From positions 248,001 to 312,000 of the forward strand of contig CBFFRP010000378.1 in assembly GCA_965644295.1 (NCBI GenBank): a stretch of DNA of 64,000 nt, given 5' to 3'. Positions 21,718 through 47,556 of the stretch are shown in pieces. The stretch comes from Paraphysomonas bandaiensis (taxonomy: Eukaryota; Protista; Chrysophyceae). The translations under genes were made by a program, and so were the position numbers. The notes under the pieces are model-generated. The model made no database searches and had not been told where the DNA came from. It saw only the letters and a program-made list of their open reading frames with translations. Numbering within the stretch: the first letter of the stretch is position 1; each line of letters begins with the position of its first letter.

Positions 21718-24700
21718 TATTGAACTACAACCAACTCCTACGTGCGTACTTGAAGTTTGGTAAAGTCAATCGCTAGTAGTTATCCTGTATTCTATGTAGC
21801 AATGAAATACAGAATATACATGACTACAGTATAGGAGTAGCTATTACAAGTATACAAAGAAACTGAAAATATAGTAGCTGTTAAAGATATGATTTGTAGA
21901 ACAGAATGTTGATGTTGGTGAATGACGTGGTTCCTAACTCACAGGGCTACAACATCATAAACTTACTATATCTCCTATAATATCAATCAGTCAATATTGC
22001 ACTAACTAAAAGCGTAAATTAATATGGCAGCGGATGGAAATTTCACGAATGTCGCCTCAGGCTCAAAGGTACCTCCCTTCGAGGAACTGAACTTCAAGAA
22101 ATTCAAGAAGTTCTTCACCTCATTCCTCATGAGACACAATCGAGCTCATCTTGTCCTCTCAAAGGATAAACCAAGGCACATTCATGATCTAGACTCTACA
22201 GTCCCAGCGGGAGCTCATATGACTGATGCACAGAAGAAGCGACTACGCAAAGCGAAGAAACTCTGGAACACCCGGAACGAGACCGCGTACTCCTTCCTGA
22301 TGGAAGTGTGCAATGCTCACCCAAAAGCAGGCACAACAGCGGCTCTCTACGAAGGAAGTACAGCAAAAGGGTTACTACAGGCACTGGAAGAGAGATTTCT
22401 CAATGTTGAAAAGAATACAGTACAGGCAGAGGTCACAAAGTTCAATTCAATGAAGATTACCTCAAGTCAGTCAGGAGCAGAGTTCGTCGACAGCGTTGAA
22501 GCCCAGGCCAAGATTCTCGAGAATCTAGGTCGTGAAGTCACGGAAGACGACAAGCTCACTCGACTAAAGGAAGGTCTCACAGACAAGAGATATTCCCAAC
22601 TAGCACACAGCCTGTATACAGCAAACGATGTGACATACGCAAGAGCAAGCAGCCTAATCAAAGGGTATGAAAACACATCATTCGGCAAGCATGCGTTGCA
22701 AAATTCAGGGGAAGACAGTGTCAATCAAGCAGTGGATGACAGTAAATGGAAAGAGCACAAGAGAAAGGGCAGATGCAATAAGTGCAAGAAACTTGGCCAC
22801 TTTGCTAGGGAGTGCAAGACTCCAGAGCATGTCATAAAGAGGATGAAGGGGACAAGATCACAGAGAAAAGATAGAGATCACAGAAACAGGGGTGATAACA
22901 AAACAAAGCTACCTGTGTGTGAGATATGTGACATCCCAGGCCATCAGACTAAAGACTGCTTCCACTTGAAGACTGCTAAAGCTGCAGTGGTCAGTTCTAA
23001 ACGGGGGCGAGACTCTAGAAGGGAAACGGCACCCTACAAGAACAAGAAGAAACCGCGAGTGTCTGTACATGATTCAGAAGATGAAGCGGGATACGAATCG
23101 ATGATATGTGTGGAAGAAGAGGTGAATCTAGCACAGAGCATGTCAGATGTTATTTATTTAGACAGCGGGTGCAACAAGATGATCCTTACCTCCAAAAACC
23201 ACATGACCAACCTTCAGCGCGCTGATAGGCAGATGTCCACAGCGAACAAAGGTAAACTGTCAATACACAGTGTTGGCGATGTAGGAAGCTTTAAAAAGGT
23301 GTACTACGCACCTGAAGCAAGTAAGAACCTCGTAGATATGAAGAGCATCACAGATAGGGGTTGTGTTGTGACGTTCGATAATGATGAAGTCGTCATTCGA
23401 AATAAGACTACGAACAAGACACTCATTAGACAGAGAAGTGTTAATGGATTATATCCAGTTCGACTCGAAGACTTACTTCAGCTTGGAGAAGAATCCTCAG
23501 CAGCACTTGAGGAGCAGGGGTTTGATGACCAGCGAATTCTATGGCACAAAAGACTTGGCCATGTCAACTATGATAAACTGACTGAGTCCGACCGCCGAGG
23601 CCTAGTTGATGGAATAAATCTGGACAAGAAATATTTCAGAAAAAAACACAAAAAAACGATATGCAAATGTAATACCTGCATGCGATCGAAACTCACGAGA
23701 AAGAACTTCAGGACTCCACGCCAGTTGATGAACTTAGACAACAACCCAAAGGAGAGAGGGGTGCTCAGTGCAGATACGATGGAAGTCCTAAACACGCCAT
23801 CGATGGAAGGCTACAAACATGTGTTACTATTCAAGCACAGTGATGCAAAACATGTATGGGCTTATGGGTTGAAAAACAAGACTGGGAGTGAAGTGTTAAA
23901 GTGTATGAAGGACATGGTAGAGACCCAACTTGTCAAAGAAGGATTGCAACTACGACGATATCATGCAGATGGCGCAGGAGAACTAGTAGGGCAACATGTC
24001 AGGCAGTACTTACGTGAAACCACCAGCACAAGGACTGTACAGGTTACTTGGACTCCACGTGACACACCCGAAATGAATTCGCTATCGGAACGCACTAATC
24101 GTACAGTGAAGGAGATGGCCCTTGCTATATTGCTCGATAGTGGCATGCCATCAGTATTTTGGTTCAAAGCAGTCTTGCATGCTGTATATCTGATCAACAG
24201 GTTACCTACGAAGACAACGAAAGGATACATCTCACCTTTTGAGTATATTACTGGAACCGCACCAGATGTGAGTGACTTGAAGATCTGGGGCTGCAAGGCA
24301 TGGGCTATTGTGCCGAAGGAGCAGCGCCGCAAAGAGTGGAAAGAAAAGGGAAAACCTGGATACTATATGGGACAATGTCAACAACCTGTTGGACACCAAA
24401 TATATATTCCAGACCTGAATGCTATTATTGTTGCAGTCAATGCACAGTTTGATGAGTCAATTCCAGAGCGTTCACAGGAGTATTTCGACGAAATAGATAA
24501 TCTACAAATCGACACCTCAGAAACAGCAGAGAGTGTAAATGACTATCAGTACCTGGTGGGCCTCAGACATCTTGATGGACACCTGTGTTATGTTACCACC
24601 AGAGTGATAGAGAGAAGAGGAGTCATTGTTGCATATAGGAGATTAGATATGAAAGGAAATACTACCGAGGAGCAAACTCCAATTCATATCAAAGATGTAG

Positions 24701-26896
24701 TAAAGATGACTCACTCTACAAAGTGTCAGACCGACAAGTTTAATAGTTTGCGAAATGAGTTGGATCAGACTTGTAATGACAGTGACAATGAACAGAGGAC
24801 TCCTGACCGCTCAAATCGGGGCGCATCTTCAACAGGTGGGGCAGATCGAAATCCCAGAACTGAAAAACGACCTCGAAAAAAACGGCACATTGTTAACGTT
24901 GGTGTCCTCGGCGATGTCTCATTGTTTCTTGATTCCTCCAACAGCACAATTAAAGAGCCACAGACGCTGGCAGAAGCAAAGAAGACTCCACAGAGAACAT
25001 ACTGGATTGAAGCTACCAGGAAGGAGGTGCACAAGCTTGAACGAAGGACATGCTGGAAGATTGTCCGAAGGCCGAAACACCGAAAAATCATAAAATCTAA
25101 ATTGGTCTTTAAAGTAAAGCGCGACCATCTTGGAAAAATTAAGAAGTTCAAAGTTCGACTTGTGGCGAAAGGGTTTACTCAAGAACAAGGAGTCGACTAT
25201 AATGAGACATTCTCCCCAGTAGCTAAAGGTGTATCATTTAGGCTAGCACTGGCACTGGCTCTGCGATACAATCTGCAACTCCGTCAACTCGATGTAGAAA
25301 CGGCATTTCCGTATGCAGATCTGGACGAAGACGTGTTTATGTCTCCACCTGCAGGAATAGATATTCCACAAGGCTGTTGTTTGAAGATTCTGAAGAGTTT
25401 GTATGGCCTAAAACAAGCGCCTCGAAATTGGCATTCAATGCTGAAGGACAGTATAAAGGCGATGGGGTATAAACAATGTGTTCTTGACCCATGTTTATTT
25501 GTACTCAAGGGTACTGATGATAACCTACATATGATACTTGTGTATGTAGATGATATCATTGTGCTCAGCTCTGACAGCCGTCATATTGAAGAAGTCATCA
25601 GCGCCTTTAAGACTCAATATGCCATGCAAGATATGGGGGACCTTAAGCATTATTTAGGTCTTACCATTGAGCGTCATAATGGCCAGATTAAGTTACATCA
25701 GTCTGCATATGCTAAAGATGTTGTGGCCAGATTCAATCACTTGTTGTCAGAAAAGAAGAGACGGTGCAAGGCAACCACACCTCTACCACCTGGCCTAAAG
25801 TTGTCCAAGGATGCAAAAGAGGAAGAAACTCGAAAACAGAGAGAATACGTTGATGCATTTCCCTATCAATCTGTTATTGGTGCCTTAATGTATTTGGCAG
25901 TGCATACTAGACCAGACATGGCATATACAGTAAATCTTCTCTCCCGGTTCACCACAAGACCCACGTACGCTGCATGTCAAGCTGCTCTGCATACTTTATT
26001 GTATTTAGAAAATACAGTTGATCAAGGTATCATATTTCCTAATTTCACAGATGAAGACCCTCTATGTGTGTACTCTGATGCAGATTGGGCCGGAGATCTG
26101 GATACATGCAGATCCACTACAGGGTATATCGTATATCTGTGGGGTGCTCCAATTGCATGGCAGTCCAGACTGCAGCCAACAGTGGCTACGTCGACTATGG
26201 AAGCTGAATATATGGCTGCATATGCTGCAATTCAGGAGATTGTATGGATACGAGGGGTGATGACAGAGCTCGGAATTCGTGGATTTGAGCTCAGTAAGAA
26301 TGCGTCTCCAACAATCTTGAATATGGACAGCAAGAGTGCGATTGATCTAGCTCAGAACCCGGTAAATCATAAACGTTCCAAGCATATTCGGATCAAGTAT
26401 CATTGGATTCGAGAGCAAGTGGGAGGCTGTATCGTCAGGCTGAATCATGTGCCAACGGCAGAGATGACAGCAGACGTGATGACTAAAGCCTTGTCCGAGA
26501 AGCTGCACTATCAGCATGTGCACACTATGGTATCGCACTAAGTAGACTTGCTCATCACAGTATATTCTGATATGTTCATTGAGTGGGAGTATTGAACTAC
26601 AACCAACTCCTACGTGCGTACTTGAAGTTTGGTAAAGTCAATCGCTAGTAGTTATCCTGTATTCTATGTAGCAATGAAATACAGAATATACATGACTACA
26701 GTATAGGAGTAGCTATTACAAGTATACAAAGAAACTGAAAATATAGTAGCTGTTAAAGATATGATTTGTAGAACAGAATGTTGATGTTGGTGAATGACGT
26801 GGTTCCTAACTCACAGGGCTACAACATCATAAACTTACTATATCTCCTATAATATCAATCAGTCAATATTGCACTAACTAAAAGCGTAAATTAATA
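21718..26896 (+). mobile_element. Intact Ty1/copia LTR retrotransposon; 307-bp LTRs (21718-22024, 26590-26896), 5-bp TSD AAATG
   Basis: Direct repeats look identical; TSD aaatg at 21713-21717 and 26897-26901; PBS tggcagcggatgg at 22025; PPT gagtgggag at 26581-26589. Confidence 0.97.
22024..26541 (+). CDS. Copia Gag-Pol polyprotein (Gag, two CCHC knuckles, protease, integrase, RT, RNase H)
   Basis: CNKCKKLGHFAREC and CEICDIPGHQTKDC; YLDSGC protease; WHKRLGH pre-integrase; RLVAKGFTQ, SLYGLKQAP and YVDD in RT; YSDADWAGD and KHIRIKYH in RNase H. IN-RT-RH order is copia. Confidence 0.97.
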   Translation: MAADGNFTNVASGSKVPPFEELNFKKFKKFFTSFLMRHNRAHLVLSKDKPRHIHDLDSTVPAGAHMTDAQKKRLRKAKKLWNTRNETAYSFLMEVCNAHPKAGTTAALYEGSTAKGLLQALEERFLNVEKNTVQAEVTKFNSMKITSSQSGAEFVDSVEAQAKILENLGREVTEDDKLTRLKEGLTDKRYSQLAHSLYTANDVTYARASSLIKGYENTSFGKHALQNSGEDSVNQAVDDSKWKEHKRKGRCNKCKKLGHFARECKTPEHVIKRMKGTRSQRKDRDHRNRGDNKTKLPVCEICDIPGHQTKDCFHLKTAKAAVVSSKRGRDSRRETAPYKNKKKPRVSVHDSEDEAGYESMICVEEEVNLAQSMSDVIYLDSGCNKMILTSKNHMTNLQRADRQMSTANKGKLSIHSVGDVGSFKKVYYAPEASKNLVDMKSITDRGCVVTFDNDEVVIRNKTTNKTLIRQRSVNGLYPVRLEDLLQLGEESSAALEEQGFDDQRILWHKRLGHVNYDKLTESDRRGLVDGINLDKKYFRKKHKKTICKCNTCMRSKLTRKNFRTPRQLMNLDNNPKERGVLSADTMEVLNTPSMEGYKHVLLFKHSDAKHVWAYGLKNKTGSEVLKCMKDMVETQLVKEGLQLRRYHADGAGELVGQHVRQYLRETTSTRTVQVTWTPRDTPEMNSLSERTNRTVKEMALAILLDSGMPSVFWFKAVLHAVYLINRLPTKTTKGYISPFEYITGTAPDVSDLKIWGCKAWAIVPKEQRRKEWKEKGKPGYYMGQCQQPVGHQIYIPDLNAIIVAVNAQFDESIPERSQEYFDEIDNLQIDTSETAESVNDYQYLVGLRHLDGHLCYVTTRVIERRGVIVAYRRLDMKGNTTEEQTPIHIKDVVKMTHSTKCQTDKFNSLRNELDQTCNDSDNEQRTPDRSNRGASSTGGADRNPRTEKRPRKKRHIVNVGVLGDVSLFLDSSNSTIKEPQTLAEAKKTPQRTYWIEATRKEVHKLERRTCWKIVRRPKHRKIIKSKLVFKVKRDHLGKIKKFKVRLVAKGFTQEQGVDYNETFSPVAKGVSFRLALALALRYNLQLRQLDVETAFPYADLDEDVFMSPPAGIDIPQGCCLKILKSLYGLKQAPRNWHSMLKDSIKAMGYKQCVLDPCLFVLKGTDDNLHMILVYVDDIIVLSSDSRHIEEVISAFKTQYAMQDMGDLKHYLGLTIERHNGQIKLHQSAYAKDVVARFNHLLSEKKRRCKATTPLPPGLKLSKDAKEEETRKQREYVDAFPYQSVIGALMYLAVHTRPDMAYTVNLLSRFTTRPTYAACQAALHTLLYLENTVDQGIIFPNFTDEDPLCVYSDADWAGDLDTCRSTTGYIVYLWGAPIAWQSRLQPTVATSTMEAEYMAAYAAIQEIVWIRGVMTELGIRGFELSKNASPTILNMDSKSAIDLAQNPVNHKRSKHIRIKYHWIREQVGGCIVRLNHVPTAEMTADVMTKALSEKLHYQHVHTMVSH

Positions 26897-36819: not shown

Positions 36820-38166
<1,347 letters not shown>

Positions 38167-38613: not shown

Positions 38614-39287
38614 GTGTATACTGTATACGGACTTATATTTTCCACCGTACATTAAGCAGTTATATTGCAATATATTGTGAATTACCTTAACCGTAAACAT
38701 ATTAATGGAATTTTAGGCCGGTTCACCAATCCTGGCCCTGTGGTTAAATATAACTATCTTGTACATAATATGTTTAATCATTGTTCTGATGATATTCGCT
38801 TGTTACCAGCTCTATATAACTTGCTATTACTAAAGCTTTTTATTGCGGATGCAGCGTATTAACTTTTTAAATATTTGGACGGTTATGACACAGCCAGGTT
38901 TGATAACCAAGGCTGTGCAGCAGAAACAAACACAATGAGTTAACCAGAGCTATATGTACGTCTGATTGCAGGAGAACAGGATGATTATTACTCTAAACAG
39001 TATGTCAAGCGTTGCAAGCTTGTACTAGTGACTCCCTCCAAGAATCACCGCGCAAACCCCACCTCCAGTGAAGTCAGAACACTAGTGTACAAACAGAACA
39101 ACACTTAACAAAACACTGAGCTGTAAAGCAATGCAACATAGAACAAGCACAACACACCACACTCGCGATGACACCACACACCACACTCGCCAGTTTGTAA
39201 ATTAGCCGTTGAATACTGCGTATTCAGAGTACTGCTACTGTATTACAATGGACCAACATGTATGTGAGTGTGCAGCATACCGTATGA

Positions 39288-39803
39288 TGCTTTTCCTACA
39301 TCTACTATCTCAGACTAAGAACCAATGTCCACATCAGATACATACATCATATCCATTGCTGCATAAACAATGTCTGCCACTACAGATCCACCAACCCTCA
39401 GGGCGATAAGCCTGAACAGCAAGGTTTATTCTCCTTACAGGATTTGGAGCTAGGACTGCGTTTCTGCCTCTACAGCGGTGAAGTGTATACCTCCCGTCCC
39501 AGCTGGGGAGCATATATACTTGAGATGGCTAAGGACTTCTATATAGATGCGGAGCGGGACACTCGGGACATGGGTTACCTTTGGCCGCTGGGGTCCCAAG
39601 CTTATTTGGCCCGGGTGCCTCATAATCATGGTAGGTATATAAACACGGTGTATCCTTCTGACCATGCTGCTGGCTGGCGCTTCAACTGCGAATTTGTAGT
39701 AGATGAGTCCGGCTTGGACGTGGTCTGGGTGCAGACCACTCGGGCAGTTGCGGCCGGCGAAGAGCTGTTGGCAGATTATGGGAAATTGTACCTCCAGTCC
39801 TAG
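39288..39803 (+). CDS. SET-domain lysine methyltransferase-like ORF inside the 3' LTR, antisense to gag-pol; start unresolved
   Basis: Open frame from 39288: ...VCHYRSTNP...QGLFSLQDLELGLRFCLYSGE...YIL...IDA...NHGRYINT...NCEF...VWVQTTRAVAAGEELLADYGKLY. All SET motifs are in order, including the GEELxxDYG catalytic Tyr. Confidence 0.8.
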   Translation, partial: CFSYIYYLRLRTNVHIRYIHHIHCCINNVCHYRSTNPQGDKPEQQGLFSLQDLELGLRFCLYSGEVYTSRPSWGAYILEMAKDFYIDAERDTRDMGYLWPLGSQAYLARVPHNHGRYINTVYPSDHAAGWRFNCEFVVDESGLDVVWVQTTRAVAAGEELLADYGKLYLQS

Positions 39804-40125
39804 TGCTAGTTCTTCAGTAATCTGTAGCGTAATAATGATATGTTTCTGATACTTCTATCGTCTCTGTCTTCATCCCGTAGTTAGTAGTTTTGCACTTACT
39901 ATAGACACGTGACTGAGGCATGTGAAATGCCACGTGGTCACATTGCCCCGCCTCCCTTTTTTTTTTTTTTTTTGTTTGATATAAGTATTATGCGAAATGA
40001 TGAAGACGGGCGTCACTCTGCGGCCCACAAATTTCAACGGAACTAAAAATTAGCCATCAAAACGAAGGTGCAGCAGAGGAGCGTTGGAGTTGGAAGGTCA
40101 CGTGTAAGTTGATTGGTCCCGTGCT

Positions 40126-43100
40126 CTAAGCGGACTCAAGGACTTGAGGGTAGCGTGTAGCCAAGTCCTTGTCGACGAGTACCATAGTGCTAGTGTCTAG
40201 TTCAGGGTGAACGAAACAATGCACGAGGTAGTTGTCATAACGGTAAGTGCGGAGAGTGAGAAGATCCTTGACGGATAATACTCTCCTAGAGCTTCGATGA
40301 TACCAGTGTGTGAACTGGATCGGAGCTACATAGGTCAGTAAGTGGGAGTCTGGTAACTGCAGTCCGTCGTACCATACGTCGCCATAAATGCGTAGGTCAA
40401 CATATGCATGGTCACCGGGTTTGAACTGAGTGATAGACTGGCGTCGGATGTCCGAGATATATTTCTTGGCACCCTCCGCTGGATAAATCAGGTGGTAGAG
40501 GTACCGTTTGCTGGAACAAAAGTCCGCGTAAGGCACTGAGTCAAAAAGGTCCTTGCTATAAGGCACTTCTCTGACATCACCATCCTGAAATCTCACAGTA
40601 AAAGTCAAAGTGGAGCGTGACTCTCTGTCACCCCGATAGTAGAGAATCTTGTCAATGACATGCTGATCCTGGTCTCGTAGAGCCATGCTGTACGCAGTTT
40701 CTCTATCACCTGGAAACAGTTTGACGTCTGTCACTGAAACACGTACCACTTGCCCTGTAGCAAGGTGCTGACAATCAATGTCATTTTTGTACTGGGTCTT
40801 AACAACAAAAGGTCCCATGTATCGATGTGACATCTTGGGATGAACCTTGGCGCCTTTGTCAAATAAAATGAAGTCGCCCGGTTGATATCGGTTCTGCTTG
40901 TCCGGGTGAACTCCCTCCCCAGCACGTTCACTCGCTAACTGCTGCTGGTAAGTTTTGGAAGCCGCCCGTAGGCCTTCTAACTGTTCATTAAGAGCAGTCA
41001 GTCTGGCGTGTGCACGCTCAGGCAAAGTCTGTATATTCATAGTTAAATATTCCAGATCATTAGAGCCAAAAGTGAGCTCAAAGGGTGAGTACCCCGTCTC
41101 GGATGAGACTTCTGAATTCAGAATGTATTGAGCGCTGGGTATCCAGCTGGGATCCTCAAAAACATCCTTTCGTTCTACACGCTTGCTGTTTTCATATACT
41201 AGGGCACGCAAATGTCGGACCACCTCACCGGTGATGCGTTCACAACCATTAGCATGCCTGTTGGCTATGCTGAAGGTGTGTCGGACGCCCATATATTCAG
41301 TCAGTTGTTTGAAAAGATCGGAAGTTAGGTCAGGACCCTGATCTGAGATGATAAGATCAGTGTGTCCGTAGTAACTCCAATACTTCCATACCGTGTTTGC
41401 CAAGTTGAGGGCAGTCACTCCTTTGACTGGCTCAAGATAAACTAACTTGGTGAACAGGTTGACTACGACATTAATGTGCGTGTATCCATCAGCACCATGG
41501 GGTGTGATTTCTACCGCATCAATACCAATAGCACTCCGAGCGCTCGGAGGCTTAAGGTTTCGGACTATAGGGATCAGCGCTTCTTTCATCGCCAATCTAG
41601 TCTTAACACAGTTTGGACACTTCGCAATGAAGTCTTCGACTACTTTGTAAGGAATTCCATGGCCGGGGAATTGCTTATTAAGTCGAATCCAAGTGGCTCG
41701 CCCACCGAGATGTCCAACTCGGGCATTATGTACTTGTTGCAAGGCATCCTCGGGAGTGACTGAACTTTGCGCATGAGGAGATACTTCCCTGTCTTCTGGG
41801 TTCATAAAATTGCCCAAGAAGTTAAAAAATTCATCCTCAGTGCAGTCCTCTCCAAGGAAGTAGGCATCGGCATAGTCTTCATCTAAGAATATACCGGACA
41901 ACGCCGCAACTTGATGCTCCCGAGATAACCAATCGGCTAACCAATTCTTGGCACCCGATATGTGTTTAATGCTGAAGTTGAAAGATTGCAAGAAAATTCT
42001 CCATCTTGTGATCTTAGGTACTTCAGACGACTCCATCCACAAGAGATTATTGTGGTCAGTCTCTATAGTGAACTGCTTCCCAATCAAATAGTACGCTAAG
42101 TGCTTGACACTGTAGTAAATACCATAAGCTTCTTGCTCTATCGTAGCCCATTTCTGAGCCTGAGCTGAAAACTTCTTTGATAGGAAGGCAATGGGTTGCA
42201 ACTGCTCTGTTCCATCTGCGAGAATCTTTTTCTGCAGAAGCACCGAGCCGATTCCTAGCTCACTAGCGTCAGTACGCAGTGTCCACTCCAAATTGTAGTC
42301 TGGGTAGAACAATTCGCAGGAATCTTGCAGGCCTTTTATGAAGCGACGATATTCAGCCTCATAATCGTGCCGCCACGTAGTCTTGTCCCAATTGAATTTC
42401 GATTTGGTCAAATCTGTGAGATGAGCAACCAAGTCTGAATATCTAGGGGTAAAACTGGAAAAGAACACGCCCTTGCCAAGCAGAGACCTCGCTTGTTTGG
42501 TGTTGGTAGGCATTGGGATTTTGCCTAGGGCTTCCTTCTTCTCAGGATTGACTTCATAGGATTTGTGTCTGCATACGTATCCGAAGAAGTCTACTTTTCT
42601 AAATCCAAGCCAACTCTTTGGCATTTTCAGTTTGAGATTCCTCTCGATGCATCTGTCAATCACTTTCTCAAATTTCTGATACGCATCTTGAGGGTCGTTG
42701 GCCAATATCAACATGTTGTCAAATATTACAATGGCCCAGTCAGAAAAATCTTCAAATATTTCCCTGACTACCTCTTGCAGAATTCCAGTAGCCGGCGCAA
42801 TACCTTCTGGCATGAACTTTGGCGCATATTGGCCCCATGGCGTCTGGATAGAAAGCCTCTCTGATGTTTCTTCCGCTAGAGGTATCTGATGGAAAGCGTT
42901 GGTCAAGTCGATATCCATATACAATGGGAAATTGATGATCTTGTCCAATTCATGCTTGACATTGGGAATTGTATAATTACCCACTTGCATGTGCTTGTTG
43001 ATGTTAACGTAATCCCCGCAGAATCGGATATAAGGTGGAGTAGCCTTGGGAGCAACCACCAAGCATGAAGCCCAAGGAGATCTGCTCTTCTGGTAAAAAT

Positions 43101-44091
43101 AACCACATAGTCTCCTGAACTCCTTTTCGGATGCTTCCCAGAGCTTAGGGTTGATCGGCCTGGCTCTGGGTTTCATTCTTTCAGGTAAAGTTTCTTTCCA
43201 CTTAAGAGTCAAAGGGTCAACACCTCGGACTCCTGTCCACTCATCAGGCACGAATACCTTCTCAGCTTTGGAAGATAAGAGATCCATAATGTTGGTCTCT
43301 TGTTTCATCTCCTGACTGACGTGAGTTTCTATTTGTTCATAGTAGTCTTTAAGAGCTTCCTCTCTAGACTTTCCGAGGAATGTCAAAGCATCTTTGAATT
43401 GAACGGGTAACTCAGTCTCGTTATCTTCTGGAGCGATAGCATCATTCGCTTTACTCCAGGGACGTCGGTGTTCCTCTCTGGATTCCATGTCCTCATTTTG
43501 TAGGGCACTCAAATTATGGTTCCCTTGAGCCGAATCTTCGAGATGATTCTCATGGGCCTGCTCCATGACAGCACACATGAAAGGATATAGCTTCCCAGTG
43601 AGGGCTGGTAGTCCCAAAATAATGTCATTAGATGACATGTCGATCACGATGAACTCACCAGTGTACTGGTAAGTGTGACTCTTGGGATCGGTAAACACTA
43701 AGTTCAATCGAACCCCTTCGTCAAGATCCTTTACGGTTCTACTGTCTGCCAAAACCACACGGTGTTTGACCTTGTAGAACCTGCTAGGTTCTAGCTTGGT
43801 ACGCAATCTATCCACAAGATCACGTGCTACGTAGTTAGCGGATAGGGCTCCTGTGTCACATAAAACTTTCACTAATTCTTCCACTCCGAACTTCTTGTCT
43901 ATAATTACTCTACCTACTGTATGTGCTGATGAAAATTTCTTGGCTGAAGGATATGAAGCATACAGCTTAGCTCCATCCTTGAAATGGACCTTTGAAGAAG
44001 TAGTATTCAATGTTTTAGCCTCTGGGAGATAATCACAATCATCATTCCCATCACAAACACTGATCACATGTTCTTCTAGGTCCTCAATCAT
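40126..44091 (-). CDS. Gypsy Pol (protease, RT, RNase H, integrase, GPY/F, chromodomain-like, C-terminal extension)
   Basis: LCDTGA protease; DLTNAFHQI, MPEGI and IFDN in RT; TDAS, EQEA, TDHNNL and ADWLSR in RNase H; H-x5-H...CPNC, IDAV, SDQG and CER in integrase; YMGPF; VIDKIL...FTVRFQD. Confidence 0.96.
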   Translation of the reverse strand: MIEDLEEHVISVCDGNDDCDYLPEAKTLNTTSSKVHFKDGAKLYASYPSAKKFSSAHTVGRVIIDKKFGVEELVKVLCDTGALSANYVARDLVDRLRTKLEPSRFYKVKHRVVLADSRTVKDLDEGVRLNLVFTDPKSHTYQYTGEFIVIDMSSNDIILGLPALTGKLYPFMCAVMEQAHENHLEDSAQGNHNLSALQNEDMESREEHRRPWSKANDAIAPEDNETELPVQFKDALTFLGKSREEALKDYYEQIETHVSQEMKQETNIMDLLSSKAEKVFVPDEWTGVRGVDPLTLKWKETLPERMKPRARPINPKLWEASEKEFRRLCGYFYQKSRSPWASCLVVAPKATPPYIRFCGDYVNINKHMQVGNYTIPNVKHELDKIINFPLYMDIDLTNAFHQIPLAEETSERLSIQTPWGQYAPKFMPEGIAPATGILQEVVREIFEDFSDWAIVIFDNMLILANDPQDAYQKFEKVIDRCIERNLKLKMPKSWLGFRKVDFFGYVCRHKSYEVNPEKKEALGKIPMPTNTKQARSLLGKGVFFSSFTPRYSDLVAHLTDLTKSKFNWDKTTWRHDYEAEYRRFIKGLQDSCELFYPDYNLEWTLRTDASELGIGSVLLQKKILADGTEQLQPIAFLSKKFSAQAQKWATIEQEAYGIYYSVKHLAYYLIGKQFTIETDHNNLLWMESSEVPKITRWRIFLQSFNFSIKHISGAKNWLADWLSREHQVAALSGIFLDEDYADAYFLGEDCTEDEFFNFLGNFMNPEDREVSPHAQSSVTPEDALQQVHNARVGHLGGRATWIRLNKQFPGHGIPYKVVEDFIAKCPNCVKTRLAMKEALIPIVRNLKPPSARSAIGIDAVEITPHGADGYTHINVVVNLFTKLVYLEPVKGVTALNLANTVWKYWSYYGHTDLIISDQGPDLTSDLFKQLTEYMGVRHTFSIANRHANGCERITGEVVRHLRALVYENSKRVERKDVFEDPSWIPSAQYILNSEVSSETGYSPFELTFGSNDLEYLTMNIQTLPERAHARLTALNEQLEGLRAASKTYQQQLASERAGEGVHPDKQNRYQPGDFILFDKGAKVHPKMSHRYMGPFVVKTQYKNDIDCQHLATGQVVRVSVTDVKLFPGDRETAYSMALRDQDQHVIDKILYYRGDRESRSTLTFTVRFQDGDVREVPYSKDLFDSVPYADFCSSKRYLYHLIYPAEGAKKYISDIRRQSITQFKPGDHAYVDLRIYGDVWYDGLQLPDSHLLTYVAPIQFTHWYHRSSRRVLSVKDLLTLRTYRYDNYLVHCFVHPELDTSTMVLVDKDLATRYPQVLESA

Positions 44092-44106
44092 GTTAACCTC
44101 CTTATC

Positions 44107-45909
44107 TCAAGGACGAGAGTCGCCGAAGCGATCTCTCCTTAAAATAGCAGGAGGTTTATCCTGAGACCCCGAAGTTGAAGAAGTGGTCTTCAAATAAGCT
44201 TGGGATTTCTCAGCCAATTCCGAAGCGGTATTGGCGAGAGCTCTAGGATTATGGCTATAACGACAATCACTCTTGTCGCACTTGCCATACATGATTTTTC
44301 TCATGCACCCATACTTCTCTTGTTTGGGTTTATGAGATGGATTCTGGCCATCCATAGCTTGCAAAGCTCCTTCTGAGTCGGATGTATCTTTCTCTTCAGA
44401 AGTTTCGGTCGCTGGCTCGCCATTAGGTTTGCCGCCAGTAGGAACATCGGTACTGTGGTTGTTGCTTTTCCATGTATCCCCATAGGCATCCCATAAATCT
44501 TCTTCATCATGAGAAAATTCATTGGAAGAAAAAGAAGCCCGTTCCTCTTCCATGTTAAATAACCTGGTAGAAGAGTGGGTGCTAGTGGAATTCTTTGCCA
44601 CTCCAGACTTAGGTCTAGAAAACATTTCACGCTTGCGCTTCATGTATTCCTCATACTTCGCCTGATGTTGCACGGTTGCTTTGAAGGGCAACTGTTTATA
44701 AGCAATCGTGATCTGGTAATGGTCTAACAGTACCTCCGTATATAGTTTGAAGAAGTCTTCCATAAAGTCGAACTTCTTCTTCGGAATACAACCTAGAACA
44801 AATTTCACATATGTGACGTCGTTCAGGGTTTTAAATAGCCTAATAAGGCCGTATTCCTTGTCGTCAGCCTGTGGACACCAACGCCTGTTGCTTTCATTTT
44901 CCAACATGATAGACAACATCCTTTTAAAGGATTCTATCAAACGAAGTTGTTGAAAATAGAAGGCTTCAAAATTGACAGCGTTGACATTGTCCCACTCCAT
45001 GACCTTCATATGGCTGAGAGATTCTTTCAGCTCGTTGTAAAACCCAACACAGCTGAAAACTTTCGTCTCTAGGGCTACGATTCTCATGAGGTCAGATATG
45101 TCCATGCTAGCTAATTCTGCGTGTTGAATATCATAGACGGAACGCAAGTGATCCTTCAGGTTTCTAGATAAAACTTTCTGGATGCGGACTTCTGTTTCTT
45201 CCTCTTCTTGGAAATCCAGAATCTCCTTGATCGCCCTTGAAACTCTACCAAGTTTGAATGTCTCGATCCTGACGTGACACTTCTTCTCCAGCCTAGTTAT
45301 ATTGACAGTCTTAGCTTGGGCCACCTTGGCGCTGCGTTTCAAATTCCGGAAGAACTTTCCTGGACGTTTCTCTCCAAAAACACTGGCAAGACGCCCCAAA
45401 TGTTCTTCTGCCTCTTCCTCAAGCTCTGAGTCGGAGCTCTCCTCACTCAGTTGCTCTTTCTTCTCTGGCAATCTCCTGAATGTAGCCAGATCTCCTAAAG
45501 TGGAATAACGGGGTTTTGGTCGGTCTTTCTTAGCACGCTTAGTGACTCCCCTGGGTGTGGTATTTGCTTTACTGCCCTTGCTGCTGAATGAATCAGGTGT
45601 GTCATCACTCTGGGTGTCTGATGAATCAGGTGTATCTGCTCTCTTAGAACTCTCCAGAGCTTGTACCCTACTGTCTAGGTTGGATATCGCAAAGGCTACT
45701 TGTCCCAGGGTGCCTTGGATCTCCTGTACTGAGTCCAGAATCTGTTGGGTTGCTGAGGATGCTGGGGCAGAAGGTGAAGGTATCATGGGCGCTTCTTCGT
45801 ATTGACTTTCATCTATTTTATCTGGTGAGTCCTCCTGTACCACTGGTTTAGGACGCCGTGGAGCAGTGGACGGCTTCTTGCTGGTCCTTTTGCCACTAGG
45901 AGTAGACAT
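44107..45909 (-). CDS. Gypsy Gag-like protein with a C-terminal CCCH zinc finger
   Basis: 600-aa ORF between the 5' LTR and pol; N-terminal coiled coil; CMRKIMYGKCDKSDCRYSH. Confidence 0.85.
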   Translation of the reverse strand: MSTPSGKRTSKKPSTAPRRPKPVVQEDSPDKIDESQYEEAPMIPSPSAPASSATQQILDSVQEIQGTLGQVAFAISNLDSRVQALESSKRADTPDSSDTQSDDTPDSFSSKGSKANTTPRGVTKRAKKDRPKPRYSTLGDLATFRRLPEKKEQLSEESSDSELEEEAEEHLGRLASVFGEKRPGKFFRNLKRSAKVAQAKTVNITRLEKKCHVRIETFKLGRVSRAIKEILDFQEEEETEVRIQKVLSRNLKDHLRSVYDIQHAELASMDISDLMRIVALETKVFSCVGFYNELKESLSHMKVMEWDNVNAVNFEAFYFQQLRLIESFKRMLSIMLENESNRRWCPQADDKEYGLIRLFKTLNDVTYVKFVLGCIPKKKFDFMEDFFKLYTEVLLDHYQITIAYKQLPFKATVQHQAKYEEYMKRKREMFSRPKSGVAKNSTSTHSSTRLFNMEEERASFSSNEFSHDEEDLWDAYGDTWKSNNHSTDVPTGGKPNGEPATETSEEKDTSDSEGALQAMDGQNPSHKPKQEKYGCMRKIMYGKCDKSDCRYSHNPRALANTASELAEKSQAYLKTTSSTSGSQDKPPAILRRDRFGDSRP

Positions 45910-46840
45910 TTTGAATTGCGGTCTTATTAATTACAGGACAGCTTGGGCTCAGGTTTATTGGAGCTATCGCAAGATCAAACTATGTAGATATTGCTGTACA
46001 AGTATTTCGCAGGCAGTCAGTTGTCTATGCGATAAAATTGTATTGCAAGTCTCTTACAAGGTCTATCTCACCCACTCAATAATTGAGGTATCCACTCATT
46101 TCGCAGACGGTCAGTTGTCAATGCGATAAGAGCAGTTTTCCAAAATGTTGAGTTTGTTGCAGTGTTCAAGGTACACTCTTAACGACGCAGTCTAACGGAG
46201 TCCGCGCTCACGGATATGTATTCTCAAACACTGCAAGATATCACTCCTTAATTCCTAAGCTTGCACTGGTATGCAATCTATAGACTCTAAGAACTATTCG
46301 AATATGAGGAGGCTAATAAAGGCCAAGCTCAGTATTCTAATGTGCAAGAATAACAAGTGTTGCAAATATTGCAAAATGAGTTGTATGTGTAACAATTACT
46401 ATCAGCGCTGATCTGCTTTTTTCAGTAATTAATTACTATGACACAGCCAGGTTTGATAACCAAGGCTGTGCAGCAGAAACAAACACAATGAGTTAACCAG
46501 AGCTATATGTACGTCTGATTGCAGGAGAACAGGATGATTATTACTCTAAACAGTATGTCAAGCGTTGCAAGCTTGTACTAGTGACTCCCTCCAAGAATCA
46601 CCGCGCAAACCCCACCTCCAGTGAAGTCAGAACACTAGTGTACAAACAGAACAACACTTAACAAAACACTGAGCTGTAAAGCAATGCAACATAGAACAAG
46701 CACAACACACCACACTCGCGATGACACCACACACCACACTCGCCAGTTTGTAAATTAGCCGTTGAATACTGCGTATTCAGAGTACTGCTACTGTATTACA
46801 ATGGACCAACATGTATGTGAGTGTGCAGCATACCGTATGA

Positions 46841-47356
46841 TGCTTTTCCTACATCTACTATCTCAGACTAAGAACCAATGTCCACATCAGATACATACAT
46901 CATATCCATTGCTGCATAAACAATGTCTGCCACTACAGATCCACCAACCCTCAGGGCGATAAGCCTGAACAGCAAGGTTTATTCTCCTTACAGGATTTGG
47001 AGCTAGGACTGCGTTTCTGCCTCTACAGCGGTGAAGTGTATACCTCCCGTCCCAGCTGGGGAGCATATATACTTGAGATGGCTAAGGACTTCTATATAGA
47101 TGCGGAGCGGGACACTCGGGACATGGGTTACCTTTGGCCGCTGGGGTCCCAAGCTTATTTGGCCCGGGTGCCTCATAATCATGGTAGGTATATAAACACG
47201 GTGTATCCTTCTGACCATGCTGCTGGCTGGCGCTTCAACTGCGAATTTGTAGTAGATGAGTCCGGCTTGGACGTGGTCTGGGTGCAGACCACTCGGGCAG
47301 TTGCGGCCGGCGAAGAGCTGTTGGCAGATTATGGGAAATTGTACCTCCAGTCCTAG
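46841..47356 (+). CDS. SET-domain ORF inside the 5' LTR (identical second copy)
   Basis: Same translation as the 3' LTR copy, offset by 7,553 bp. Confidence 0.8.
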   Translation, partial: CFSYIYYLRLRTNVHIRYIHHIHCCINNVCHYRSTNPQGDKPEQQGLFSLQDLELGLRFCLYSGEVYTSRPSWGAYILEMAKDFYIDAERDTRDMGYLWPLGSQAYLARVPHNHGRYINTVYPSDHAAGWRFNCEFVVDESGLDVVWVQTTRAVAAGEELLADYGKLYLQS

Positions 47357-47556
47357 TGCTAGTTCTTCAGTAATCTGTAGCGTAATAATGATATGTTTCT
47401 GATACTTCTATCGTCTCTGTCTTCATCCCGTAGTTAGTAGTTTTGCACTTACTATAGACACGTGACTGAGGCATGTGAAATGCCACGTGGTCACACGGTG
47501 ACATAACTAATATCTTAAGTAGCTGAAACTGAACTTACACAATAATCAGTTAGTAT

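Follow-up and report, generated by a model that had tools for sequence, protein, structure and literature searches.

The window analyzed here is a 64,000-nucleotide (nt) stretch of the Paraphysomonas bandaiensis genome (contig CBFFRP010000378.1, positions 248,001 to 312,000). Our subject is a retrotransposon at window positions 38884 to 47495 that has a reading frame for a SET domain, the fold of SET lysine methyltransferases, in each of its long terminal repeats (LTRs). The two LTRs are 1,059 bp each and 100% identical. With this LTR pair, a target site duplication (TSD), the primer-binding site (PBS) and polypurine tract (PPT) sides of the internal region, gag, and a pol gene whose domains run reverse transcriptase (RT), RNase H, and integrase (the Ty3/Gypsy order), the element is a recently inserted Ty3/Gypsy retrotransposon (Table 1). 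Because gag and pol are on the minus strand, the SET frame, which is on the plus strand, is antisense to them. A preliminary description of the locus had recognized a Gypsy element with an identical antisense SET frame in both LTRs and had taken the LTR identity and the intact TSD as signs that the frame moved recently with the element. The LTR comparison, the minus-strand gag and pol, and the CGGT on both sides bear this out.

The gag-like open reading frame (ORF) is conserved in related elements. The window pol lacks the canonical RT motif YxDD and reads IFDN at that place (42715-42726, minus strand). The same four residues are found in five related pol proteins whose C-terminal regions are ~50 to 85% identical to the window's (L062 and L072 to L075). 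IFDN is thus a trait of the clade, whose elements are clearly still mobile. It had also been suggested that the SET protein might be paired with a chromodomain of the integrase. This idea found no support, since the last 370 residues of pol gave no Pfam chromodomain match, even at E values up to 5; a very divergent integrase chromodomain in the window pol is conceivable.

The frames in the two LTRs (39288-39803 and 46841-47356) are stop-free and identical and contain the SET motifs listed in the preliminary description. As that description stated, there is no in-frame ATG after the TGA at 39285. It proposed splicing or a non-AUG start as the remedy, and here our results differ. A search with the LTR of the organism's own genome (62.5 Mb in 669 contigs) gave several length variants. 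One of these, 1,360 bp long (e.g., L007:1501-2860), is collinear with the window LTR but has 301 additional bases at LTR position ~510, and it contains an uninterrupted, unspliced, ATG-started ORF of 244 amino acids (aa) (L007:1640-2374). The window frame is 99% identical to residues 108 to 244 of this intact protein. What remains of the beginning of the gene is the original ATG at 39370 with 7 original codons, followed by a frameshifted tail that stops at 39451-39453, for a total of 27 codons. The 301-bp deletion takes out residues 8 to 107 and shifts the frame in both window LTRs. The deleted segment has GT..AG ends on neither strand, and contigs from RNA libraries show the same 301-nt skip, with the ends CA..GC. 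Thus, an in-frame ATG is missing because of a deletion and not because of splicing. The window element is unable to make the SET protein; its copy of the gene is a dead version, and the lack of a start codon is simply explained. The window copy is SET-null yet recently transposed. Other LTR variants have different deletions within the same SET ORF.

The deleted form is not confined to the window. In the young family of elements to which the window copy belongs, we found at least 6 intact SET ORFs (C70 twice, C218, C496, C589, and C242) versus at least 15 broken ones, and both counts are lower bounds. The genomic-context comparison covered copies other than the divergent C51, C656, C206, C364, and C491. 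LTRs with the 301-bp deletion occur at three loci with differing flanks: the window, C645 (TSD AGCC), and C589. The deleted form has therefore inserted at least three separate times, and because it inserts repeatedly, the gene is not needed in cis.

The element at C589 (G000:C589:2028-10942; L079 and L001) is flanked by one intact TSD, CCTG, and its gag and pol frames run without interruption. The 5′ LTR, 1,360 bp long, has an open SET ORF; the 3′ LTR is 1,059 bp long, has the 301-bp deletion, and shows zero differences from the window LTRs. Outside the deletion, the two C589 LTRs differ by six substitutions. In LTR replication, both new LTRs receive their U3 from the 3′ LTR of the parental RNA, so a deletion that occurred in a 3′ LTR after insertion would yield an element of the window type. 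C589 thus shows what an element at the start of the deleted lineage would be expected to look like. This account describes the individual copies as they are.

Intact SET genes are found well beyond the young family. In the same genome, at L046/L047, a pol C terminus that is 85% identical to the window's is followed by an antisense SET ORF at 58% identity; at L049, the values are 73% for pol and 58% for SET. More distant open SET ORFs elsewhere in the genome are 40 to 46% identical, and the nearest SET matches outside the family are only 27% identical. A search of 5.8 billion proteins gave five relatives. An exhaustive profile search gave 366 clusters at E values of ≤1e-3, 100 of them at ≤1e-10, and most of these clusters are 230 to 330 aa long and match over the whole profile. 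Relatives were found in Tara Oceans metagenomes and in MMETSP. Across metagenome contigs, SET identity ranges from 30 to 96%. In 10 of 10 such contigs, the SET ORF is convergent with a large ORF on the opposite strand 110 to 330 bp away, and that ORF either matches RT, RNase H, and integrase families or is 48 to 100% identical to the window pol. The Tara contig L062 has an LTR at 603-2033 between PBS-side and PPT-side junctions, with the SET ORF at 1149-1886. Because this ORF lies between the two junctions, the SET gene is inside the LTR there too. (Repeats in L072 and L073 were considered as LTR boundaries and rejected as assembly wrap-around, and L062 was used instead.)

The pattern of divergence tells how the gene was inherited. 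Over nine contigs, SET identity and pol identity are correlated (r = 0.86), a point weakened by the nonindependence of the pairs. Between families, DNA similarity of the LTRs is nearly confined to the SET ORF and the LTR tips. The pairwise ratio of nonsynonymous to synonymous substitutions (dN/dS) is 0.09 to 0.18 between lineages, with dS saturated, and 0.29 to 0.47 within young families. Taken together, the codivergence, the confined similarity, and the low dN/dS point to one old acquisition followed by vertical descent with the element under purifying selection. The SET gene is a property of a clade of elements and not of one family. Neutral evolution of the frame, which the preliminary description had named as an outcome that would speak against its proposal, is at odds with the between-lineage ratios.

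The position of the gene within the LTR is supported by a poly(A) site. An RNA contig has 22 A's behind L031:2636 on the element-sense strand. Via the collinear first 510 nt of the LTR, this element-sense site maps 82 nt from the LTR edge, at window position 38966. Because the poly(A) site of the element is there, the SET gene is in U3, the half of the LTR in which it had been presumed to lie. The SET ATG and the start site of the element must be within ~400 bp of each other, and a shared divergent promoter is plausible. Between the SET start and this poly(A) site, a metatranscriptome contig skips 50 nt (L031:2256-2307) with GT..AG ends on the element-sense strand; the skip could represent either a very small intron or an indel by which copies differ.

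There is also a transcript in the SET sense. The MMETSP transcript contig L068 is 915 nt long and contains a complete ORF of 237 aa. It is 98.8% identical to, and collinear with, a genomic copy of a sister lineage (L061:2802-3710, on C338). It ends in six A's where the genome reads differently, ~25 nt past an AATAA-rich motif. The motif AATAATGA that follows the stop codon in the window is also found after the stop codon in L062 and ~25 nt before the poly(A) tail of L068. These features indicate that L068 represents an unspliced, polyadenylated mRNA; its 5′ end may be the end of the assembly rather than the start of transcription. LTR sequence, including the form with the 301-nt deletion, is present in contigs from poly(A)-selected metatranscriptomes. 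From the conservation, the U3 position, and the transcript, we consider it highly probable that the window holds a recent Ty3/Gypsy element from a clade that carries a small, separate gene in U3 on the strand opposite gag-pol.

The C338 locus (G000:C338:268762-275400; L061, L045, and L048) contains a tandem segmental duplication (~92% identity) with two open SET ORFs of 237 aa at a distance of 5.5 kb from each other. These ORFs lie in LTR fragments beside a host ORF that is hydrolase-like, and the interval between them has neither gag nor pol; the fragments keep the terminal 43 bp of the LTR and are without its other end. These ORFs may be LTR-derived free-standing genes. Two apparent solo LTRs of the window family, L015 (G000:C120; TSD CACC) and L026 (G000:C309; TSD AAAC), both have SET ORFs broken by deletions. 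Thus, the earlier prediction that solo-LTR formation would scatter free-standing SET genes is borne out in part only: the copies in the two solo LTRs are broken, and the ORFs in the tandem fragments are open. At G000:C70:1-14739 (L031, L033, and L056), LTRs with an intact SET ORF alternate with internally deleted elements at a spacing of 6,143 bp. The elements lack the first 392 residues of gag, and the arrangement looks like a tandem array with shared LTRs.

The identity of the protein was established by profile and by fold, the two checks that had been proposed for it. Pfam PF00856 matches the window frame with an E value of 6.5e-5 and 23.7 bits (cutoff, 22.4). A family profile made from 53 sequences matches solved SET enzymes with E values of 7e-9 to 1e-6, among them LegAS4 (the best match), EHMT2, MLL3/4, EZH2, and SETD8, and many of the relatives bear a precomputed PF00856 annotation. 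The AlphaFold2 model of the intact protein, made with the 53-sequence alignment, has a mean predicted local distance difference test score (pLDDT) of 93.8 and a predicted template modeling score (pTM) of 0.85. When this model was compared to the PDB with Foldseek, the top 50 matches were all SET lysine methyltransferases at a probability of 1.00. VIA-align gave Z scores of 11 to 12 and root mean square deviations of 2.2 to 3.5 Å over 112 to 139 residues, with 341 chains at Z scores of ≥8; the matches include SET1/MLL, SET7/9, SETD8, and ATXR5 and cover model residues ~50 to 244. Among predicted viral structures, SET proteins of giant viruses match the model by fold with E values of ~1e-7. Protein Atlas look-ups returned generic SET clusters only and nothing on origin. 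The window frame is a real SET domain, beyond chance.

The intact protein comprises a basic N terminus, a single long helix, and a compact domain with the SET fold that has neither pre-SET nor post-SET zinc clusters. The basic N terminus, with its runs of K and R, is conserved in every lineage and looks like a nuclear localization signal. Of the motifs for S-adenosylmethionine (SAM) binding and catalysis, the protein keeps a GxG-type motif, Y-x-G-E, R-Y-I-N-T, and E-E-L-L-x-D-Y-G, which includes the catalytic Tyr. Conservation over the 53 sequences is at least 90% for the GxG-type motif, for the Tyr and Gly in Y-x-G-E, for the motif III Asn, and for the G-E-E-L-L-x-D-Y-G block. Close relatives in the alignment have Ala or Val two residues ahead of the catalytic Tyr. 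In SET8 and MLL1, this position sets the product state, and by analogy, we speculate that a small residue there would allow more than one methyl group to be added. Complex prediction with the SET domain, the tail of the host histone H3, and SAM gave scores of 0.52, 0.13, and 0.04, which speak neither for binding nor against it.

Several observations weigh against an active enzyme that is expressed from these elements and useful to them. In every sequence of a 9-sequence alignment, Thr takes the place of the NHS-motif His, so the NT in place of NH that had been noticed in the window is real and conserved in the family. The protein has no post-SET region, and some members terminate right after D-Y-G-K. 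With this lack and the loss of the His, activity would not be assured. The intact 244-aa protein scores 21.2 bits against Pfam SET, under the 22.4 cutoff, and single-sequence Pfam support is marginal. The transcript evidence is one assembled contig with only six terminal A's, and this contig belongs to a sister lineage, which is represented in this genome by copies (on C338) that are without gag and pol. Word depth in contigs from poly(A)-selected marine metatranscriptomes is 50 to 124 over the window-family LTR versus 2 to 8 over pol, but this 10- to 15-fold excess may reflect copy number, and the contigs are strandless. (Read depth was rejected as a measure of expression, since the contigs give no strand, ends, or level.) Most copies in the young family have lost the ORF yet move; any benefit from the gene is thus dispensable in cis, and it may be slight. 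That the protein acts as a chromatin writer is something that we infer, and its enzymatic activity is putative.

The Thr, the absence of a post-SET region with some members ending at D-Y-G-K, and the marginal Pfam scores would also be expected if the protein had the SET fold but was no enzyme, serving instead as a binder or decoy that, for example, occupies histone tails or sequesters a host silencing factor. We take this possibility seriously but consider it unlikely. The catalytic Tyr, the motif III Asn, Y-x-G-E, and the GxG-type motif are conserved to at least 90% over 53 sequences. Furthermore, LegAS4, the best profile match, likewise lacks the His, its motif being RYINFS. LegAS4 methylates histones, and PRDM9, too, is active although it lacks this His. 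Because LegAS4 lacks the His yet is active, the change from His to Thr is a weak argument against catalysis. A role for the RNA instead of the protein seems improbable. On that hypothesis, the protein would be incidental, and the antisense RNA would overlap and regulate the element transcript, e.g., via double-stranded RNA. The SET gene and the element transcript do share the LTR, and antisense transcription has been proposed as a regulator of plant LTR elements (PMC7264820). However, the constraint is at the level of the protein (dN/dS of 0.09 to 0.18 with dS saturated), the frame is still open at 30% identity, and covariation in the alignment is strong enough to give a model with a pLDDT of 93.8.

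Two further explanations concern the origin and the state of the window copy, and both appear very improbable to us. If the window copy were expressed as a working enzyme from an upstream spliced ATG or a non-AUG start, one could point to the frame that is open from 39288 and to the candidate donors and acceptors present in the sequence. But the gap arose by deletion of 301 bp, with microhomology (CCA) at the junction and without GT..AG ends, the intact copies are unspliced, the known transcript is collinear with the DNA, and the product would miss residues 8 to 107, i.e., the conserved basic N terminus and the first part of the fold. Models with splicing or a non-AUG start for the window copy were rejected because of the deletion and the unspliced intact copies. 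The least probable explanation, in our judgment, is that the frame is a recently captured fragment of a host gene that is decaying neutrally and has no role for the element. Most copies in the young family are indeed broken, the window copy among them. Yet the gene is present in the same place and orientation, intact and selected, in lineages whose pol proteins are only ~50% identical, and the nearest nonfamily SET matches in the genome are, as mentioned above, only 27% identical. Neutral decay is already largely refuted.

The explanation that we favor has several steps, which are not equally secure. The SET protein is probably active as a SAM-dependent lysine methyltransferase and translated from an antisense mRNA of its own. 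We give about even chances to the next step, in which it would enter the nucleus and act in trans by methylating a histone tail or some other protein involved in chromatin or silencing. The element family would gain through altered silencing or expression of its copies, and copies without SET, such as the window's, would free-ride on protein from intact copies. Judged by the sequence, the mark could be activating or repressive. In its complete form, the proposal is that a clade of Gypsy elements in marine protists encodes an active histone lysine methyltransferase as a complete antisense gene in U3; that the mark made by this enzyme alters silencing of the family; that SET-deleted elements parasitize SET-competent ones; and that an LTR fragment with the gene retained can turn into a host gene that stands alone and is expressed. 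We put this forward tentatively, and as a whole, it may well turn out to be wrong in one part or another.

Extra genes in LTR retroelements are of a known kind. Maize Grande (gene23), rice RIRE2, and Silene Retand have an extra conserved ORF opposite gag-pol near the 3′ end of the element (PMC7264820). These plant antisense ORFs have their own promoter and, in some cases, a nuclear-localized product; they lie internally, between pol and the 3′ LTR, and no enzymatic domain is recognized in them (PMC7264820). The elements described here are like them in having an extra conserved ORF antisense to gag-pol. In contrast to them, the SET gene is wholly inside the LTR, is present twice per element, survives in solo LTRs, and has a clear SET fold. 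The plant-type location between pol and the 3′ LTR is not the one found here: the ORF is inside both window LTRs and likewise inside the LTR of L062.

Among retroviruses, sag of mouse mammary tumor virus is in U3 and nef of human immunodeficiency virus overlaps U3, and both are sense-strand genes. HBZ of human T-cell leukemia virus type 1 (HTLV-1) is antisense with a promoter in the 3′ LTR, and its coding sequence is mostly outside the LTR. To our knowledge, none of these three encodes a methyltransferase. The antisense promoter of HTLV is mentioned in the context of the plant elements (PMC7264820). The likeness to the retroviral genes is the use of the LTR by accessory genes for coding or for an antisense promoter; the difference is that, in the SET elements, the promoter, the ORF, and the poly(A) signal all appear to fit inside U3-R in the antisense orientation.

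With the chlorovirus protein vSET, the SET proteins of giant viruses, and Legionella LegAS4/RomA, the family shares a small SET domain free of zinc clusters in a genetic parasite. However, identity to the viral and bacterial proteins is only 15 to 25%, the conserved basic and helical part at the N terminus is peculiar to the family, and the carrier is a retrotransposon and not a virus or a bacterium. Retrotransposons of dinoflagellates and charophytes have captured DNA methyltransferases, which, as far as is known, are in the internal region and in the sense orientation. An epigenetic writer as cargo has its closest parallel in these elements. They are alike in keeping such a gene and differ in enzyme class, cytosine methylation versus protein lysine methylation. 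A search of the full-text literature, which did not cover Repbase, Dfam, or GyDB, gave no description of a SET gene in an LTR or a retrotransposon. Thus, an accessory gene in an LTR retroelement is of a known kind, the location in the LTR and the enzyme class are new, and the family is apparently undescribed.

Transposons are usually viewed as targets of chromatin silencing and not as carriers of histone-modifying enzymes. Similarly, an LTR, which is present in two copies after each insertion and stays behind as a solo LTR, is normally regarded as regulatory sequence only; here, it holds a complete gene for a SET-type protein that is under selection. If the protein is active, these elements would offer a natural system in which to learn how a transposon manipulates the chromatin state of its own copies or imposes it, and the many natural deletion variants, still transposing, would allow SET-bearing and SET-less elements to be compared directly. 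Ocean metagenomes and metatranscriptomes are rich in members of the family, and many environmental "SET domain proteins" may be genes of retrotransposons.

TABLE 1 Features of the retrotransposon in the window, in order of position
Feature	Position in window	Strand or size	Basis or remark
TSD CGGT	left, 38880-38883; right, 47496-47499	4 bp	Flank comparison
3′ LTR	38884-39942	-	Deleted form, variant A; identical to 46437-47495; PPT adjoins inner side
Inferred U5	38884-38965 (82 nt); 5′ LTR counterpart, 46437-46518	-	Mapped from loose end of 22 A's
Stop-free SET frame	39288-39806	+	From ~39391, residues 108-244 (whole SET domain), then TAG
SET gene remnant start	39370-39453; second copy, 46923-47006	+	Comparison with L007:1640-2374
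Deletion junction, CCA microhomology	39388-39393; second copy, 46941-46946	+	Comparison of LTR variants
AATAATGA motif after stop codon	39831-39838	+	Candidate poly(A) signal of SET mRNA by homology
PPT	39943-39975	-	Adjoins 3′ LTR; same junction in sister copies
pol, 1,321 aa	40126-44091	-	Pfam RVT_1, RT_RNaseH, rve, Integrase_H2C2
gag-like ORF, 600 aa	44107-45909	-	ORF list; weak CCCH zinc-finger match
PBS side of internal region	46417-46436	-	Adjoins 5′ LTR; junction recurs in sister copies and L062
5′ LTR	46437-47495	-	Identical to 3′ LTR; second broken SET copy, frame 46841-47359

The gene content of the genome says something about the host. There are at least 7 loci for silicon transporters (SIT), and neither the light-harvesting family PF00504 nor PsbO (PF01716) had a match in the 62.5 Mb. 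From this content, the host looks like a nonphotosynthetic, colorless, silicifying marine protist; a diatom, which the silicon transporters could suggest, is unlikely given the lack of matches to the two photosynthesis families. Within the window, an intronless tubulin gene of 447 aa (36823-38166, plus strand) ends ~720 bp upstream of the insertion site of the element. A second, unrelated retrotransposon is represented by a Ty1/Copia polyprotein ORF of 1,505 aa at 22024-26541 (plus strand), with RVT_2, gag_pre-integrs, and zinc knuckle domains.

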